A stretch of DNA of 64,000 bases from Paraphysomonas bandaiensis. Lineage: Eukaryota; Protista; Chrysophyceae. The position numbers and the translations under genes are program-made. The DNA is taken from NCBI GenBank assembly GCA_965644295.1, contig CBFFRP010000395.1, positions 62,001 through 126,000 of the forward strand. The letters run 5' to 3'. Below are positions 22,821 to 30,008 of the stretch, piece after piece. Each line of letters starts with the position of its first letter. Positions within the stretch are counted from its first letter, which is position 1. The notes beneath the pieces are model-generated. The model saw only the letters and a program-made list of their open reading frames with translations. It ran no database searches and had not been told where the DNA came from.

Positions 22821-23793
22821 ATTTAAATAACTTCGGTGTAGGTACCGCAGGAAGAAGTCGTAATATATTGTAGTGCGTTAAGTATTGAGAAGTTGTATAG
22901 ATTCAGTGTGCGTTTTATATGACATACCTTATGCCAATACCAGAATTAAATAGTGAAAGTTGACTCGGTGATGGTGGATCACATATTAAATAATGGAGAA
23001 TCATGTCAAATGTGTCTATGACTCGCTTCTTTGAGTGCATATGCTGTTAGAAAAAGACATAACTGAACAATGCTTTCACTATGCTGATATTATAAGTTAG
23101 AAACACATAGTAAAATATAATAAACTTAAGATCAATACACTTGTCATGATGTCATTCATTGTCAATTGCGAAATTCATATTGCCTCAATTATCAACTACC
23201 AATAATTTCCGTACAATCTTGTTAGATATCACGATCTTTCAGTTTCGCTACTATGATTGCTATCATAACATTTTAGTTTTCATAATACAGTTAAACACTT
23301 AACATTCTTTCATTAACAGTCATAATAGAAATAGTTCTGAACTACAGCTTGTAAGCTTGTAATTGCTCTCAAACAGCAAAGCTCAAGTTATGCCGAATAA
23401 AATGTACGTACACTAATATAGAGTAGATAATATTCGTTCTAACTATTTAGAACGTTGTAGATAGTCATTCTCTCACAACGCACAACATATTCTACGGCAT
23501 CTAGTTACAGCTTTAAGTGCACTACACTGAGTAGTGAGTACACTGGAAGCGGAAGATAGGTAGATATTCTACTAGTTGATGTTGCCTGTGATTGGTACGT
23601 TGCTTGGTGTATTGTTTTTTGCATCAACTCATTCTACTTGCTCCAAAATTCTGTTTTTGTGAAGTACAAGGTGATTGGTATATCCTACTAGCCATCAAAT
23701 AGCTCTAAGAATATATCTGCTTATGGAAAAGGTGTTAGGGTTCCACCAATTCTAGCATACGTTATAAACTACAATTAATGAAATTTTACAATT

Positions 23794-26700
23794 CTACATC
23801 ACAGAAAAAGACCTATCCTGTCTGCTATATCCAAGCTTTGTCGCCGTTTTCTCGCTACCACCAGTTGAAGCTCTACGCAGTCGTGACTTAGATGACGAGA
23901 GAAAAGAATCTATACCACCTCGCGCAGACAAAAACTGACTGTAATTTCCCCTAGGAATTGTCAATATTTCTGAAGAGTCAGGTGTACACGACGAATCAGA
24001 TATATACGTTATAACTTCGTTCGGCATCGAGTCATCCACAGCATTTATATTAATGCTTTGCAACATACCCGATATAAATAGATGTTTTGCATTAGCAAAA
24101 ACCGAGTACGGCACAAAATATACTTCGCCAATAATGGTGGTCTTAATTGATCTAGCAATACCCGCTACAGGTTCAACAGTGACAAAAGGCAGGCCAGTAC
24201 GTGCATTGACGTACATGTAGTACTTGTCGCTTGTGGCTGTAGTGCCTAAATACGACACTCCCTCATTGTCTCTGATAATATTATGATTAAGTTGGTGGCG
24301 TCGCATACTTCCGAAGACAAATATATAGGTCGAAGAACGATTGCTAAGTTCAAATGTCTCATCACCAGTGGATATACCAGGCAATTCAATGTTATCAGTT
24401 CCCTCAGCATCACTCGAACTGCTTTCACTTTCACAGAAACTGTCCCCTGGAACGTGAAATTCTCTGATCGGACTTGAGGGTGATGAAGTATTGCTACTCT
24501 TTGCAAGATGCCTAGAAGAGAGTGGACTTGTCGATGATGCAATAATAGGGCTCGGAGGATTGATATGAGTTGGTACATAATATTCCTCTTCATTTGGATT
24601 TCTATTAATAGTGGGTGAACTATGTCTACGATGTATCACTATATCACTGTTGTCAATATTTGCAGTCGAATGATGAATACGATCTGACTGATTTGAAGAA
24701 GGTATTCCAACGCCACTGGTGTACTTTTGACTATTTTTTTCTAGCCCCTCTAGAATTTTCGCGGTTTGCCTCATTTTCGAAACCAACTGGCGACAGCTCT
24801 CCGGCGAGTCAAGCACAATACTTTCACCTTGTGGGCGGTATAGGACTGCACACTTTGGCTGATCAAAATTAATTGTTACTGTTGTCTCATAATGCTCAAA
24901 CAGAGTCGCGATTTCCTCCAACATGCGTGAGTAGTCTCCATAACTTCTGTCATTCACACAATCGCGGGATTTATCCATCATTCCCACGACATCAAAGAGT
25001 ATATGTGCTGCTTGCACATATAAACCTACAGATTCACTAAATCCGAAGGAATTATGTACTACAGTAGCTAATGTATAAGCTACCACAATCGCCTCTACCC
25101 GGTGATTGGATTGACGGGAAGATGCAGACATATCCATACTGAGAAACCCCTTCAGAGCTTTTTGGTAAAACTTTATTGCAAGTGTGGTATCTCCTGCATA
25201 CTCGTGCAAGTCTCCCAGTTTACTATAAGCACTCCACTTGATAACATTTTTCATGTCAGATGGAGGTAAAGAGCCGGCACTACAATCGAGTGCAGTTTCG
25301 GAGCTACTAGGATGTTCACTAATGATCTTCAAAGCCTTCATAATATACTTCTTTGCTTTCGCACAGTCACCTTTTTTCGTGATTCTGTCGGCCAGTGCAA
25401 CCAACAGAGCCGCGTCGTCCAGTGTACCTTGAACCTTTCGCCGAAGGGTATCTGTGCGCTCCCCAACTTCAACTGAATCTCGACTCTCTAACTTCTTTTT
25501 TTCTTTTACGTCTGCCAAGCGCAATAGGGATATCATTAGTGAGGCATCCGTTTCATCAGAGCACACAGCTCGACGAATTCCAATTGCCTTTTTCAGTACT
25601 TCTTCCGCGCGGGAGTAATTCTCTACTGAGACATATAGGTCTGCCATAAATTCCAACATGTCCGCAGTTGTGTGGTTGAAGTCTCCATAGAGCCGCCGAG
25701 TGATGCGAATGTTCTTGTTCATCATGTGAATTGCATCAGTACGCTTGTCGAGTGCGTGTATGGCCTTGGCAAGTCGGTAATACAAAATTGCGACCCGTGG
25801 GTGGTATGCAGTCGAATGAAACACCTTTCGTCTGTCCATAACCTGCTGTAGTGTGACAACGACATCTTCACCTTTCTTTCCTTTCAATGACTGGATTGAT
25901 GCGAGTAATAACATTGCCTGGTCCAAATAAAAAACAGACTCTGTGTAGTTCTCTGATTGCTTTGAAAACAACTGAATAGACTTCTTGCACATGGACTCCA
26001 TCTCCTTCACCCTTGCCTTCCAGGAATCATCTAGGTCATTATGACCACATCCACCCGCAAACATAGTTGCGGCGATCATATACGAGCTTGTCGCAATATC
26101 CTCCTCGTTTCCAGAAGCCTTCTGAATATCCAGGATACGAGTGCGCGAAGACACTGAATCTTCCGTGAACTCACATGCTTCTGACACCATGGCATGAAGT
26201 GTAAGAGTAGAGCAGAGACTAATGTCAGATTGATCAAACAGTAAAGAATAAATCTCAGACTTCGCCTCGAGTACTCGCTGAGTCCAGGTGTGTACCCACT
26301 GCAGTGGGTCCTGCAATGTCTCATCATCCGACCATATCACCTGATCTGCGTCACGACGAGATAATGCTGAAAACACAACATATAGAATTTTCTCTACGTC
26401 AACAACAGCTGCCAGCTGTATGGGTAAGTCCTTTAAATTATAATCTACTCTTTCAAACTCTTTTTCAAATAAAACAGAATAATTGTTGAGCAGGTCTGAG
26501 AGATTCCAGTTAATACTGCGCAAACAGTACAGAAAAGCATCCCTATGCTGATCGAGACCGAGAGAGACCAAGATCTCTCTGTCGTACATGGCAAAAGCTA
26601 AAAGACTTGTAGCCTCCTCTCTAATATCTTCCCTATGTGTAGCAAGCGTATCCAGAACGTGCATCGACTCCTGTGGTATTAGAAAAGAGTCTTTGGATGA

Positions 26701-27636
26701 GGACACCACAAGAAGAGAGAGGCGTTCAAGCTCGTCAAATACTCCTGACCACTTTTCTTCCATATCTTCGTCCTCTGGAAGAACTGGATCAAAGTGTGTC
26801 ACTACTGACTCCCACAGGAAATGGACTAACTCCATGGGTATAAAAACGTTGAAGGGAAGAGGACTAAGAATCAGGAACATGTGGAGGTTCCTTGGAGACA
26901 AGGATACAACATTCTTGAGAAGAACCATGGGAAGACGACCTCCTGATGTAGTGTTGCAATCAACCCCTAGTAAGAATGCAGACTCAATGAGAGCTTGAAC
27001 TGACAATACGTCATTTCTCTCAGTCATCCCACATATCTCACCGTCGCAAGCTGAGCAATCAAAAATAGAATTTCCGGATGATAACACACTAGATACGTAT
27101 ATTGTATTATCCAGTGCGATGCCACTACGAGTAGTGGCCAAAATAGCCATTCCTAAGGAAGTCAGTGGCTTCAAAAGAGCACAGTTCTCTATACCATCCA
27201 GAACAAGCAAAATATTACATGTAGGTCCCACTATAGACTGTATATCATGTATCCTATTTTCCCAATTCAATCTCATATGTGATTTATTTTTTCCATAATC
27301 AATAAATGAATATTCCATATTATACATTCTACTTAAATCTTTTGCAATAGTCTCTAATAACATATCAAGTGTCCATATAGAGTGATCCCCTTTATTCATA
27401 CATATCCATAATATCCCATCTTTATATTTTTCTTGTATTTGTTGACTATGACATATAAAGGATACTATAGATGTTTTACCAGTAGAAGATATGTCATCTG
27501 ATGTGTTTGATAGTATGATAATGGGTTGAATGTATGTAGATGTAGAAGGGCTGGATAATAGACGATTGAGGATTGTTTGTTCAATATCTGGTCGAGGAAT
27601 GTAATGTGGAGGTGGAGATGGTATAGGAAGATTCAT
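23794..27636 (-). CDS. STAND/NB-ARC (Apaf1-like) NTPase + TPR repeats + C-terminal gamma-glutamylcyclotransferase (GGACT/AIG2)-like domain; apparently intronless
   Basis: PSPPPHYIPRP pre-P-loop, STGKTS Walker A, YKDGILWI, LLVLDG Walker B, ILATTRS; kinesin-light-chain-type TPRs (HPRVAILYYRLA, YSRAEEVLKKAIGIRR); YIFVFGSMRRHQLNH..LPFV..IIGEVYFV. Confidence 0.75.
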   Translation of the reverse strand: MNLPIPSPPPHYIPRPDIEQTILNRLLSSPSTSTYIQPIIILSNTSDDISSTGKTSIVSFICHSQQIQEKYKDGILWICMNKGDHSIWTLDMLLETIAKDLSRMYNMEYSFIDYGKNKSHMRLNWENRIHDIQSIVGPTCNILLVLDGIENCALLKPLTSLGMAILATTRSGIALDNTIYVSSVLSSGNSIFDCSACDGEICGMTERNDVLSVQALIESAFLLGVDCNTTSGGRLPMVLLKNVVSLSPRNLHMFLILSPLPFNVFIPMELVHFLWESVVTHFDPVLPEDEDMEEKWSGVFDELERLSLLVVSSSKDSFLIPQESMHVLDTLATHREDIREEATSLLAFAMYDREILVSLGLDQHRDAFLYCLRSINWNLSDLLNNYSVLFEKEFERVDYNLKDLPIQLAAVVDVEKILYVVFSALSRRDADQVIWSDDETLQDPLQWVHTWTQRVLEAKSEIYSLLFDQSDISLCSTLTLHAMVSEACEFTEDSVSSRTRILDIQKASGNEEDIATSSYMIAATMFAGGCGHNDLDDSWKARVKEMESMCKKSIQLFSKQSENYTESVFYLDQAMLLLASIQSLKGKKGEDVVVTLQQVMDRRKVFHSTAYHPRVAILYYRLAKAIHALDKRTDAIHMMNKNIRITRRLYGDFNHTTADMLEFMADLYVSVENYSRAEEVLKKAIGIRRAVCSDETDASLMISLLRLADVKEKKKLESRDSVEVGERTDTLRRKVQGTLDDAALLVALADRITKKGDCAKAKKYIMKALKIISEHPSSSETALDCSAGSLPPSDMKNVIKWSAYSKLGDLHEYAGDTTLAIKFYQKALKGFLSMDMSASSRQSNHRVEAIVVAYTLATVVHNSFGFSESVGLYVQAAHILFDVVGMMDKSRDCVNDRSYGDYSRMLEEIATLFEHYETTVTINFDQPKCAVLYRPQGESIVLDSPESCRQLVSKMRQTAKILEGLEKNSQKYTSGVGIPSSNQSDRIHHSTANIDNSDIVIHRRHSSPTINRNPNEEEYYVPTHINPPSPIIASSTSPLSSRHLAKSSNTSSPSSPIREFHVPGDSFCESESSSSDAEGTDNIELPGISTGDETFELSNRSSTYIFVFGSMRRHQLNHNIIRDNEGVSYLGTTATSDKYYMYVNARTGLPFVTVEPVAGIARSIKTTIIGEVYFVPYSVFANAKHLFISGMLQSININAVDDSMPNEVITYISDSSCTPDSSEILTIPRGNYSQFLSARGGIDSFLSSSKSRLRRASTGGSEKTATKLGYSRQDRSFSVM

Positions 27637-27786
27637 GATGGGATGTGAATCGCACAATATGGCAGATAATGTAAATAATAGTGTGGTGATGTATATATGG
27701 ATGACCCTCAAGATACAACACAGCACAGCATACTGTACCATACACCCATATACACTATACACTATACACTATACACTGGCGATACA

Positions 27787-28194
27787 CACATACATACATA
27801 CATACATACATACATACATACATACATGCATACATACATACATACATACATACATACATACATACATACATACATACATACATACATACATACATACATA
27901 CATACATACATACATACATACATACATACATACATACATACATACATACATACATACATACATACATACATACATACATACATACATACATACATACATA
28001 CATACATACATACATACATACATACATACATACATACATACATACATACATACATACATACATACATACATACATACATACATACATACATACATACATA
28101 CATACATACATACATACATACATACATACATACATACATACATACATACATACATACATACATACATACATACATACATACATACATACATACA

Positions 28195-28224
<30 letters not shown>
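27787..28224. repeat. (CATA)n microsatellite between divergent genes
   Basis: Direct observation. Confidence 0.98.
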
Positions 28225-28225
<1 letters not shown>

Positions 28226-28415
28226 GCATCTAACGGTAATGTTCTCTGATGTTATGTTGTAGTTTCACTTTACAATCAGATCATCATCATAATCTAACTA
28301 CATACACTGATCTTCTATCTCATTCATCTCTATATTACCATCACATATCATCACAGATATCTATGTATACTACACCATAATCTTCTTATAATTCTATTAA
28401 TCTCGTTTCATTACT

Positions 28416-30008
28416 ATGGAATTTGATGATGTAGCTGATATACAAGATGATGAACCAAATAATTATGCTGATCCTGATGTTGAATTTGAAGAAGAATGTT
28501 GTTTTTGGTTAATGAAATTATTACGTGGAAGAAATTGTGGAAGAAAATTAAAAAGAAGAATATTTAAATATGGTTTAATTAATTTTATTGTGGGATTCTC
28601 GATGGTTACAATAACAACATTTCAAGGTATGAGTATATATATGTAAACTAATAGAAGGATATATGACTGATATAATTAATTTGTATAGATGGAAGTTATG
28701 GTGGATTAAGTTATTTTTCTAGTGCTGAACATGGCTTAACACTTATAAGTTTACAATATTGGTGTAGTATACTTGCCATTATTATCAGTTTTATTCTGTT
28801 TTTTGCTATTAAATACTGGGCAAGTTTAGTCACCAACCGAGATCTTCTTCAAAAGCTCCTGGCATGTTTTATGATGTATGGAACGCTTCAATTCATAATG
28901 ACCCTCTATTGTGTTTGTGTGCTTTTCTTACTCTTCAGAGGGGTTGACTGGGATGTAAGTGCATTACTACTAGTATATTGGTATATATTAGAGCTGATAT
29001 CGTTTCATAGGACGATCCTGTTCCCGAAGAGCTCTTGATAGCTTATGTGTTTTCAGTCATATTTCTGTGTCCGTATGTGGCAACAGTGTTCTATTATGTT
29101 CTCGATGTCTCCTACCTATCGGGTGAGATTGATCTGAGAGCTGATATATCAGAACCCGAAGTCCCAGAGGACACGGTGGATCTCAGTAATGTTATGCTGA
29201 AAGATCTTTGCGGGGCAGTCATTGCCCTCCCTTGCGTGTGTTGCATCCATCTGTCTTCTGTGTGCGACTGTTGGACGACTATTATGAAATTGTTCGAGAG
29301 GGACCCACGATCCTTGGAGGAGGAGGCGGAGAGGCAAGAGATGGAAAAACAACGCAGAGAACGTAGGGGAGCAAATATGCAGCAAGCATTTGCGTCTTTG
29401 ATGTCCCTTGTTAGGTAAACGAAGCACATCGTGTACCTACTTTTGTGCATTAACGTTATTCAATTGCTAGTGTTCCAGGACGACGTAGTCGTACAGTTGT
29501 TCCATCCCAGGAGGAGGAAGATGTGGAGGACGAGGAGAGTGGTCAGGTCCTCTATGGTCTCAGGCAGCCAGTCGAAGATCCCATTCCAGCCCCAAGCCCC
29601 CATTCTCAATCTCCACGTGACGAGTCAAAGGGCGACCTGAACTCAATGGCTGACGGTGGTTCTCGTACGCTGTCTGTCCATCAGTTCAAAGCGCTATGGC
29701 CGGCTCTGAGTGTGGCAGGATCATTCCAATGCAAGCTCCGTTCTGCGCCGAACTTGCAAACACTCACTCAACACCTAAGGAAACAAAACTTTCATATCGT
29801 ATTTGCGGCGAGCCCAACCGACAGAGAGACTGAGGTATCCATTTGCAACATACGTGAGTCACCGGAGGAGGTGTGGTTCATGGCACGGTTCCTGTTCTCG
29901 ACTTCTATGTTTTCAGCTGTAATGAAAGCTCAGGATCAAGATATAGTAGAGAAGCATGTGCGACGATTTGCACTCGCAAGAGTGCTGAAAATCGATACCT
30001 CCGGATAA
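28416..30008 (+). CDS. Multi-pass membrane protein (about 4 TM) with a C-terminal beta-adaptin appendage platform-like domain; 4 exons
   Basis: GT-AG introns near 28627, 28954 and 29415; hydrophobic helices in exons 1-3; C-terminal LSVHQFKALWPAL..LTQHLRKQNFHIVFAA..WFMARFLF..SAVMKAQD resembles B2-adapt-app_C. Confidence 0.6.

Follow-up and report, generated by a model that had tools for sequence, protein, structure and literature searches.

A single gene in the window (the whole 64,000-nucleotide stretch of Paraphysomonas bandaiensis DNA that was analyzed) encodes a protein in which an NB-ARC ATPase switch and TPRs are followed by a tethered GGACT fold without the catalytic Glu, and other marine protists share this conserved NB-ARC/TPR/GGACT-like layout. 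We consider the chances about even that the protein is a conserved, single-copy STAND switch whose tethered pseudo-GGACT domain serves as a binding or adaptor (output) module. No paper in the literature searched unites NB-ARC/STAND and GGACT/AIG2-like domains in a single protein, in agreement with the original prediction that the architecture is an unfamiliar one.

The open reading frame has the position and length first given for it, as the ORF list and its translation yielded 1280 uninterrupted codons (1280 aa) on the minus strand, from an ATG at 27636 to a stop codon at 23794-23796. The proposed order of parts, namely NB-ARC, TPRs, Ser-rich linker and C-terminal GGCT-fold domain, was confirmed by Pfam, profile searches and hhalign (Table 1). 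The claimed absence of an N-terminal effector also held, as the NB-ARC module begins at about residue 5, no exon was seen upstream of residue 1 and the homologues begin at the equivalent position. Expression of the gene was indicated by RNA-type contigs, which cover both 23797-26018 and 25999-27647, with a single contig reaching from the TPRs through the stop codon. Coverage in a transcriptome-like run was confined to the CDS of this gene and, additionally, pieces of both the TPR part and the GGACT part in polyA marine metatranscriptomes match it at 99% identity or higher. No splice joint with canonical ends was found in the RNA-type contigs and polyA metatranscriptomes matching the gene. A 1194-base "skip" joint (23964/25159, metatranscriptome X4) was considered as an intron and rejected as an assembly chimera, because its ends are non-canonical (TA..GC), it occurs in one contig and one of its sides spans 29 letters. 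The gene is present as one copy in its genome.

Table 1. Features of the NB-ARC/TPR/GGACT-like gene, with positions counted along the window
Feature	Residues	Positions	Strand	Basis
Whole gene		23794..27636	-	1280 codons plus stop, intronless; colinear with four full-length homologues
NB-ARC / AP-ATPase module (NBD-HD1-WHD)	~5-300	26737..27624	-	Profile, Pfam, language-model features, hhalign
Walker A	48-56	27469..27495	-	Alignment of five members
Walker B (LLVLDG)	142-148	27193..27213	-	Alignment of five members; aligns to Apaf-1 LLILDD...LLTTR
Helical arm between NOD and repeats	301-590	25867..26736	-	All-helical in a poor model
TPR region	~591-920	24877..25866	-	Pfam TPR_12, TPR_8, TPR_10, TPR_NPHP3
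Ser/Pro-rich linker	966-1100	24337..24741	-	Composition; covered by polyA metatranscriptome contigs
GGACT/AIG2-fold pseudoenzyme domain	1101-1250	23887..24336	-	
Phe1187 at the catalytic Glu position	1187	24076..24078	-	MAFFT and hhalign agree; equals invariant E85 of the canonical GGACT alignment
Motif PRGNYxxFxxARGG	1228-1241	23914..23955	-	Invariant in 10/10 members
RRAS in the C-terminal tail	1254-1257	23866..23877	-	Alignment; RR[AK]S throughout subfamily A

Profile-level evidence points to NB-ARC membership of the N-terminus, which had been claimed to be of the Apaf1 type and is best described as a divergent module of that kind. Searched as a single sequence against Pfam, it gave E values of 0.04 for NB-ARC and 0.001 for NPHP3_N. 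Its NB-ARC (PF00931) scores of 13.5-15.7 bits fall below the gathering cut-off of 23.5 bits, and NB-ARC was matched by four of the five family members (best E 0.0012). A profile built from the N-termini of five homologues matched Apaf-1 (1z6t) with an E value of 3.2e-5, positions 6-297 corresponding to Apaf-1 residues 120-411, and this homology covers the NBD, HD1 and WHD; the same profile matched the plant RPW8-NLR 8zf0 with an E value of 0.011. By language-model features, residues 1-480 fall among NB-ARC/nSTAND clusters (0.94), and hhalign of the N-terminus with Pfam-positive NB-ARCs of the same genome reached 81%. A phmmer search of the N-terminus against the PDB returned noise only, and the AF2 model of residues 1-480 from the single sequence was unusable (pLDDT 36.8).

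In the alignment of five members, the GK[ST] of Walker A is found in all five (G53-K54-T55 here, with G53 and K54 invariant), while the first Gly is Asp or Glu in 5/5, giving the deviant form [DE]xxxxGK[ST]. Walker B retains D147 in every member and has G or N in place of the second acid; downstream, T168-x-R170 is invariant and contains Arg170, the sensor-1 "TTR" Arg. A candidate for the MHD motif is M-H-V at residues 325-327, a part where the 3D model is unreliable and whose His is not retained in the homologues. With the first Gly of Walker A and the second acid of Walker B missing family-wide, the NOD could bind nucleotide with poor hydrolysis, or there may be no nucleotide cycle. The deviant Walker A and Walker B (D[GN]) motifs are also consistent with a housekeeping TPR scaffold, similar to NPHP3 or kinesin light chain, in which the P-loop module would have degenerated and become inactive, the GGACT domain would be a relic and there would be no signaling switch. 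The sub-threshold Pfam matches to NPHP3_N and TPR_NPHP3 suit such a scaffold, as does the conservation of the gene in single copy. We nevertheless regard it as very improbable, because homologues only 27-29% identical all retain GK[ST], the Asp of Walker B and the Arg of sensor 1, which argues for selection on nucleotide binding, because the match continues through HD1 and WHD of Apaf-1, and because the strong constraint on the GGACT-like domain indicates that it is no relic. Even a mere scaffold would be a clean case of pseudoenzyme recruitment.

Between the NOD and the GGACT-like domain, the TPRs are the part with clear Pfam support, TPR_12 (PF13424) scoring 56.8 bits against a gathering cut-off of 30.1. 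No Pfam family matched the arm that precedes them. The linker that follows the repeats, of about 135 residues, consists of 21% Ser, is not conserved among the homologues, and is a long, flexible, disordered tether for the GGACT-like domain.

The C-terminal assignment to the GGACT/AIG2 family also proved correct. This sequence alone matched Pfam GGACT/AIG2-like (PF06094) with an E value of 0.08 and 13.9 bits, against a cut-off of 22.8 bits that was passed by family members P0002 (25.6 bits) and P0007 (23.4 bits). When the family was compared to canonical GGACTs by hhalign, the match reached 98.9% (E 3e-17). The domain was found to have the GGCT fold, HMMER tied it to bona fide GGACTs, and its PDB sequence matches at E<10 were GGACTs only. 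Amongst its best structural matches is the C-domain of allophanate hydrolase.

Loss of the catalytic Glu, another part of the original prediction, was seen throughout the family. Both MAFFT and hhalign place K1184 at the invariant Asp and F1187 at the catalytic Glu of the LDxxE motif, the latter site presumably corresponding to Glu82 of human GGACT. There are no acidic residues between E1171 and D1201, a Glu occupies the catalytic column in 0/10 family members, and the Asp/Glu pair has been lost in all ten; both residues are kept in nine canonical GGACTs and in the four canonical GGACT/GGCT paralogues of the same genome. In the equivalent of the substrate loop YG[ST]L, which reads F1108-G-S-M1111 here, every member has the Gly and the Tyr varies. 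Subfamily A has [FY]GS[LM] at this loop (MAFFT); subfamily B has xGCC and has replaced the NH motif as well. The invariant PRGNYxxFxxARGG goes back to PxGDW, a looser motif found in canonical GGACTs. Because the catalytic Glu is missing in all ten members, the known cyclotransferase chemistry is unlikely to be carried out by this domain, and these sequence comparisons support a non-catalytic binding module.

The loss of the Glu may still leave some enzyme activity possible, because other chemistry has evolved on the GGCT fold, as in the C-domain of allophanate hydrolase. The GGACT-like domain could thus be a neo-enzyme effector, its fold re-tooled through an invariant set of Arg, Tyr, Asn and Glu residues and activated by NOD-driven clustering, for example to deplete or modify a metabolite. 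Twelve polar residues are indeed invariant (R1112, R1113, Q1115, Y1129, T1132, T1133, R1229, N1231, Y1232 and R1239, together with E1171 and Y1173), including four Arg and part of PRGNYxxFxxARGG, and no other part of the protein is as well conserved. The sole family-invariant acidic residue, however, is E1171 of GEVY, which is invariant in canonical GGACTs too, nothing hints at a substrate, and domains that lose a catalytic base commonly end up as pseudoenzyme scaffolds, so we find such an effector improbable.

Four full-length homologues (P0004, P0006, P0009 and P0011) are colinear with the protein over residues 5-1254 and have an identical domain order at their low end-to-end identity, and these comparisons suggest that the fusion is old and fixed across the family. 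The mean pairwise identity is 43% in the GGACT-like domain, 40% in the TPRs, 38% in the NB-ARC module, 32% in the arm and 18% in the linker. Among the NB-ARC genes of the same genome that were examined, the GGACT-like end is unique to this one. A word-index search with the full protein gave no relatives, but the family shares few exact words and the result is uninformative on absence; the same applies to a search with a five-sequence full-length profile, which gave only a bacterial TPR-CHAT protein in a list swamped by TPR candidates. When metagenome contigs were scanned with back-translated motifs, none of 164 pattern matches was confirmed. PADLOC defense models gave no relevant match.

The original prediction described a sensor STAND protein with a ligand-binding or decoy module. 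Its non-catalytic binding part was strengthened by the loss of the Glu in 10/10 members, and its decoy part was weakened by a single-copy, old, unpaired gene whose domain is unlike the host GGACTs. An integrated sensor or decoy would either mimic a host GGACT/GGCT targeted by a pathogen effector or bind a metabolite of the gamma-glutamyl or isopeptide kind. Once occupied, it would trigger the NB-ARC module, and the NOD oligomer or a helper protein would provide the output. A dead catalytic site with a retained FGSM loop suits ligand binding without turnover, and the integrated domains of plant NLRs, such as RRS1-WRKY and RGA5-HMA, are likewise non-canonical globular domains that often lie at the C-terminus, past the repeats of an NB-ARC protein. 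Additionally, other NB-ARC/TPR genes of this genome are without an N-terminal effector, so sensors that lack an effector may be usual here. Several observations speak against this explanation, which we hold to be possible but doubtful. The four host GGACT/GGCT genes are the least similar to the domain, with no more than 10 bits compared to 35-41 bits for distant GGACTs, leaving no close host paralogue to mimic. Whereas a plant-style integrated decoy would be expected to be lineage-specific and to lie next to a paired helper NLR, the fusion here is ancient, conserved and single-copy, neither expanded nor variable, and no second NB-ARC gene was found on the contig at E <= 0.01. Finally, subfamily B replaces both the substrate-loop motif (GCC for GS[LM]) and the NH motif, which disfavors a conserved gamma-glutamyl pocket.

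From architecture and conservation, which also suggest the direction of signaling, an output or adaptor role was rated somewhat above a sensor or decoy role, because the protein has no globular, non-repeat domain other than the NOD and the GGACT-like domain, and the latter, its one candidate output domain, is the best conserved and was not copied from a GGACT of the host. If the domain is such an output module, the TPRs would be the sensing and autoinhibitory part, and binding of a ligand would lead to nucleotide exchange and oligomerization of the NB-ARC module. Oligomerization would in turn cluster the tethered pseudo-GGACT domains, which might then relay the signal non-catalytically, by recruiting a partner or by holding an anionic small ligand, and would not be expected to cleave gamma-glutamyl amides.

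A comparable arrangement of NOD, arm, TPR-like sensor and C-terminal output is found in STANDs of the MalT type (mechanism in PMC4381067). The output of MalT is a LuxR-type DNA-binding domain, whereas here a GGACT-fold pseudoenzyme lies on a long disordered tether and the NOD is of the AP-ATPase type. With Apaf-1, CED-4 and plant R proteins (1z6t, 8zf0), the protein shares the P-loop GK[ST], the Walker B Asp, the "TTR" sensor-1 Arg and the presence of C-terminal repeats; it differs from them in having no N-terminal CARD, CC or TIR, TPRs in place of WD40 or LRR, the two replaced Walker residues and the additional GGACT fold. The NB-ARC-TPR proteins of brown algae, which are candidate receptors (Zambounis et al. 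2012, PMC3341825), and L014, L015 and L016 of the same genome also have an NB-ARC followed by TPRs, often with the N-terminal effector missing, but these are multi-copy or variable with strong Pfam scores, whereas the gene described here is divergent and single-copy. Compared to mouse (1vkb) and human (3jub/3juc/3jud) GGACT, the domain has Lys and Phe for the LDxxE Asp and Glu, Phe for the Tyr of YGTL, the new invariant PRGNYxxFxxARGG and a fusion to a 1100-residue STAND protein. The C-terminal domain of allophanate hydrolase/urea amidolyase (4iss, 5i8i; Pfam AH_C) is partnered with an amidase in place of NB-ARC/TPR, and its kinship to the GGACT-like domain stops at the fold, with none at the sequence level.

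The family offers a defined, testable case, as it is conserved, single-copy and expressed at sea, with a pseudoenzyme of known fold on a switch. To our knowledge, infection and stress sensing and the triggering of cell death in diatoms and other marine protists are poorly understood, and the outputs of their NB-ARC/TPR proteins are unassigned. It is conceivable, though unlikely, that the dead GGACT fold serves STAND/NLR-like proteins of marine protists as a previously unrecognized signaling end, either as an adaptor similar to death folds that is clustered when the NB-ARC module oligomerizes, or as a sensor of gamma-glutamyl or other anionic metabolites. If the domain is an output or a metabolite sensor, it would add a new type of module to the STAND/NLR toolkit and a further non-enzymatic use of the GGCT fold. 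A metabolite sensor would, moreover, link a switch of the Apaf-1 type to glutathione or stress chemistry, with programmed cell death in diatoms or responses to viruses as examples.

A MINDY-3/4-like gene lies upstream in both P0011 and P0006 and was not found in the window. The RRAS of the C-terminal tail fits the consensus of basophilic kinases, and the tail may be phosphorylated at this site.

The C-terminal domain of the protein falls below the Pfam GGACT threshold (E 0.08), and only four PDB sequence matches were obtained at E<10, all of them mouse or human GGACT. An exhaustive HMMER search with residues 1090-1250 against 1.84 billion representatives returned 22 hits, including a fragment of this very protein (P0001) and nine members of the family (E 1e-16 to 1e-28); four of these are 1353-1466 residues long and carry the GGACT-like domain C-terminally. 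P0010 (E 1.9e-17) was not counted as a member, as it matched in eight short stretches and is apparently a repetitive protein. The remaining 11 hits were weaker (E 1e-5 to 1e-3), and all seven of those scanned with Pfam were bona fide GGACT proteins (62-154 bits). Additionally, family members P0002 and P0007 exceed the Pfam GGACT cut-off on their own, and profile-profile comparison of the ten-member domain family with nine canonical GGACTs (hhalign) gave 98.9% probability and E 3e-17. The AF2 model of the domain, built on an alignment of it, had a pLDDT of 89.5 and a pTM of 0.84; its Foldseek matches at E <1e-3 were all GGCT-fold entries, and ESM Atlas matches of the domain were to GGACT clusters only. 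The GGCT fold assigned to the C-terminus in the original prediction was thus confirmed.

The Asp and catalytic Glu of the LDxxE motif are invariant in the nine canonical GGACTs. The Glu had been predicted to be missing here, and indeed MAFFT and hhalign independently placed K1184 on the Asp and F1187 on the Glu. This register is kept in the AF2 model, where a helix (1177-1186) comes after the GEVY strand and F1187 lies directly past that helix, and the sequence of the protein contains no acidic residue between E1171 and D1201. Across the ten family members the catalytic column holds F, L, C, S or T and never Glu; E1171 of GEVY, shared with canonical enzymes, is the sole acidic residue that the whole family keeps. 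Because all ten members lack the Glu and the four canonical GGACT/GGCT-type genes elsewhere in the genome retain the D..E pair, the alignments indicate that loss of the catalytic pair is real, old and confined to the fused lineage, although another residue might conceivably take the place of the Glu in three dimensions. It is possible that the domain is a re-tooled enzyme, since GGCT folds have been reused before, for example in the allophanate hydrolase C-domain. In one of the canonical genes, L005, the GGACT frame comes after a D123/Cdc123-like frame.

Features of the gene and its surroundings, with related loci; identities are means over all pairs of five full-length proteins
Feature	Window coordinates or contig	Residues	Identity
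Studied gene, minus strand	23794-27636	1280 in length	
First ATG	27636		
Stop codon	23794-23796		
NB-ARC			38%
Walker A	27469-27495		
Walker B	27193-27213		
Arm (helical, between NB-ARC and TPRs)			32%
TPR		~590-830 (Pfam TPR models positive)	40%
Linker		966-1100	18%
GGACT-like domain			43%
RR[AK]S motif	23866-23877		
Microsatellite	27755-28250		
Contigs of run X1	23797-26018; 25999-27647		
Intergenic, uncovered by X1	23412-23723		
Junction in X1 and X12	29401-29426 to 25999 onward		
Approximately double depth	25999-27750		
Candidate tandem duplication	25999-29426		
NB-ARC/TPR gene L014	C80	1032 in length	
NB-ARC/TPR gene L015	C69	1405 in length	
NB-ARC/TPR gene L016	C351	769 in length	
Canonical GGACT/GGCT-type gene L004	C69		
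Canonical GGACT/GGCT-type gene L005	C433		
Canonical GGACT/GGCT-type gene L006	C74		
Canonical GGACT/GGCT-type gene L007	C360		
MINDY-3/4-type neighbour, L017	L017 (1-1436)		
MINDY-3/4-type neighbour, P0006	contig of P0006		

As a single sequence, the N-terminus gave weak Pfam matches (NPHP3_N, E 0.001; NB-ARC, E 0.04), and four of the five family members touch Pfam NB-ARC. Invariant among the five N-termini are G53-K54-[ST], the Walker B Asp147 (LLVLD), the T168-x-R170 'TTR' sensor-1 motif and an L-P pair at the position of the NB-ARC GLPL. Used as a profile, this alignment matched Apaf-1 (1z6t; E 3.2e-5), its positions 6-297 lying on Apaf-1 residues 120-411, which comprise the NBD, HD1 and winged helix, and matched a plant RPW8-NLR at E 0.011. 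Residues 1-480 also fall among NB-ARC/nSTAND clusters by language-model features, and hhalign against Pfam-positive NB-ARC genes of the same genome gave 81%, from P-loop to Walker B. Judged by these profiles and motifs, the N-terminus is probably an NB-ARC module. The predicted lack of an N-terminal effector was upheld, since the Apaf-1 alignment starts at a shared P-Q-x-P directly past the start codon and leaves no space for one. Family-wide, the first Gly of Walker A is replaced by Asp or Glu ([DE]xxxxGK[ST]) and the second acidic residue of Walker B by Gly or Asn (D[GN]); these deviations suggest that nucleotide is bound but hydrolysed weakly or not at all. Further along the protein, TPR_12 and related Pfam models are clearly positive, and the linker, with 21% Ser, is read as a disordered tether.

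Within the GGACT-like domain, residues invariant in all ten members are F1106, G1109, R1112, R1113 and Q1115 at its start, Y1129, G1131, T1132, T1133, G1170, E1171 and Y1173 in its middle, and the C-terminal block P1228-R-G-N-Y...F1235...R1239-G-G...F1245. Its mean pairwise identity compared with that of the NB-ARC indicates that it is constrained at least as much as the ATPase. Subfamily A, which holds this protein, has [FY]GS[LM]RRHQxNH and, just past the domain, RR[AK]S (also in P0002, P0003, P0004 and P0007), a basophilic-kinase consensus; in subfamily B the equivalents are xGCCRRNQLxS and a conserved carboxy-terminus, NSK[SC]xLK. The gene is single-copy in the 62.5 Mb, 669-contig genome, no second NB-ARC match was found on its own contig, and the domain scores at most 10 bits against the host's own GGACT/GGCT genes, whereas distant library GGACTs score 35-41 bits. 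The original prediction had offered either a ligand-binding or a plant-style integrated decoy role for the domain. The decoy part is weakened by the invariant residue set, the region-wise conservation and this genome context; ligand binding is retained among the roles considered below.

STAND proteins such as Apaf-1 and MalT use their repeats for sensing and autoinhibition, and nucleotide exchange makes their NOD oligomerise. By analogy, the TPR repeats here would play both parts, and nucleotide exchange would lead to NOD oligomerisation. The pseudo-GGACT domain may then act as a binding or adaptor module at the output end, or bind a conserved ligand that is small and probably anionic; either role would fit because it is the only other globular domain, is flexibly tethered, is the most conserved region and is rich in invariant Arg and Tyr.

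In the literature searched, no paper was found to describe a GGACT/AIG2-like domain in any NB-ARC or STAND protein. Database members of the family are of metagenome or metatranscriptome origin; those that have a name are called 'GGCT/AIG2-like YtfP' or 'TPR repeat protein', and one is a partial entry from a Symbiodinium microadriaticum assembly. NLR-like STANDs are a known class; new are the GGACT-fold accessory domain and, within the GGCT fold, this pseudoenzyme branch. At least three further NB-ARC/TPR genes are encoded in the genome, and each exceeds the cut-off of Pfam NB-ARC. They lack a GGACT end, and an N-terminal effector is missing from two of them. The N-terminal ~540 residues of L015 matched no Pfam family at E <= 0.01.

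The gene is a single long ORF, upstream of which 42 further ATG-less codons are open before a (TACATACA)n-type microsatellite. This microsatellite, of ~500 bp with an 8-base unit, adjoins the gene start and reads ...IHTY.../...MYVC... in all frames. Run X1 (same organism) is transcriptome-like: its contigs cover the gene, one of them starting in the TPR region, crossing the linker and C-terminal domain and reaching the stop codon, and leave an intergenic stretch uncovered, whereas the DNA-like run X12 covers everything. Two marine metatranscriptomes, one polyA-selected, contain pieces at least 99% identical from the TPR part and C-terminal domain; these reach 23752, so the 3' UTR is 42 nt or longer. 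Canonical splice joints were not seen in contigs matching the gene. The single joint observed, 23964/25159, was rejected as an intron, as it has TA..GC ends and occurs in one contig of run X4 with 29 letters on one side, which points to a chimera. Altogether, one transcript for the whole gene is strongly suggested by this evidence, which consists of contigs, not reads.

Several minor observations concern the surroundings. In two metagenome contigs, the homologue has a divergently oriented MINDY-3/4-type deubiquitinase gene upstream of it; no such gene lies beside the studied gene in the window. The genome also holds at least seven silicon-transporter loci over the Pfam cut-off, which suggests that the host is a diatom or a near relative that silicifies. 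X1 and X12 contigs carry a direct junction with 4-nt microhomology (CATC), the signature of a ~3.4 kb tandem duplication; the assembly contains neither the junction nor a second copy. Depth is single-copy at the junction unitig (91 vs 87) and approximately double over part of the region, where the microsatellite may inflate it. The putative unit includes the gene's 5' half (residues 1-546), the upstream region and the microsatellite.
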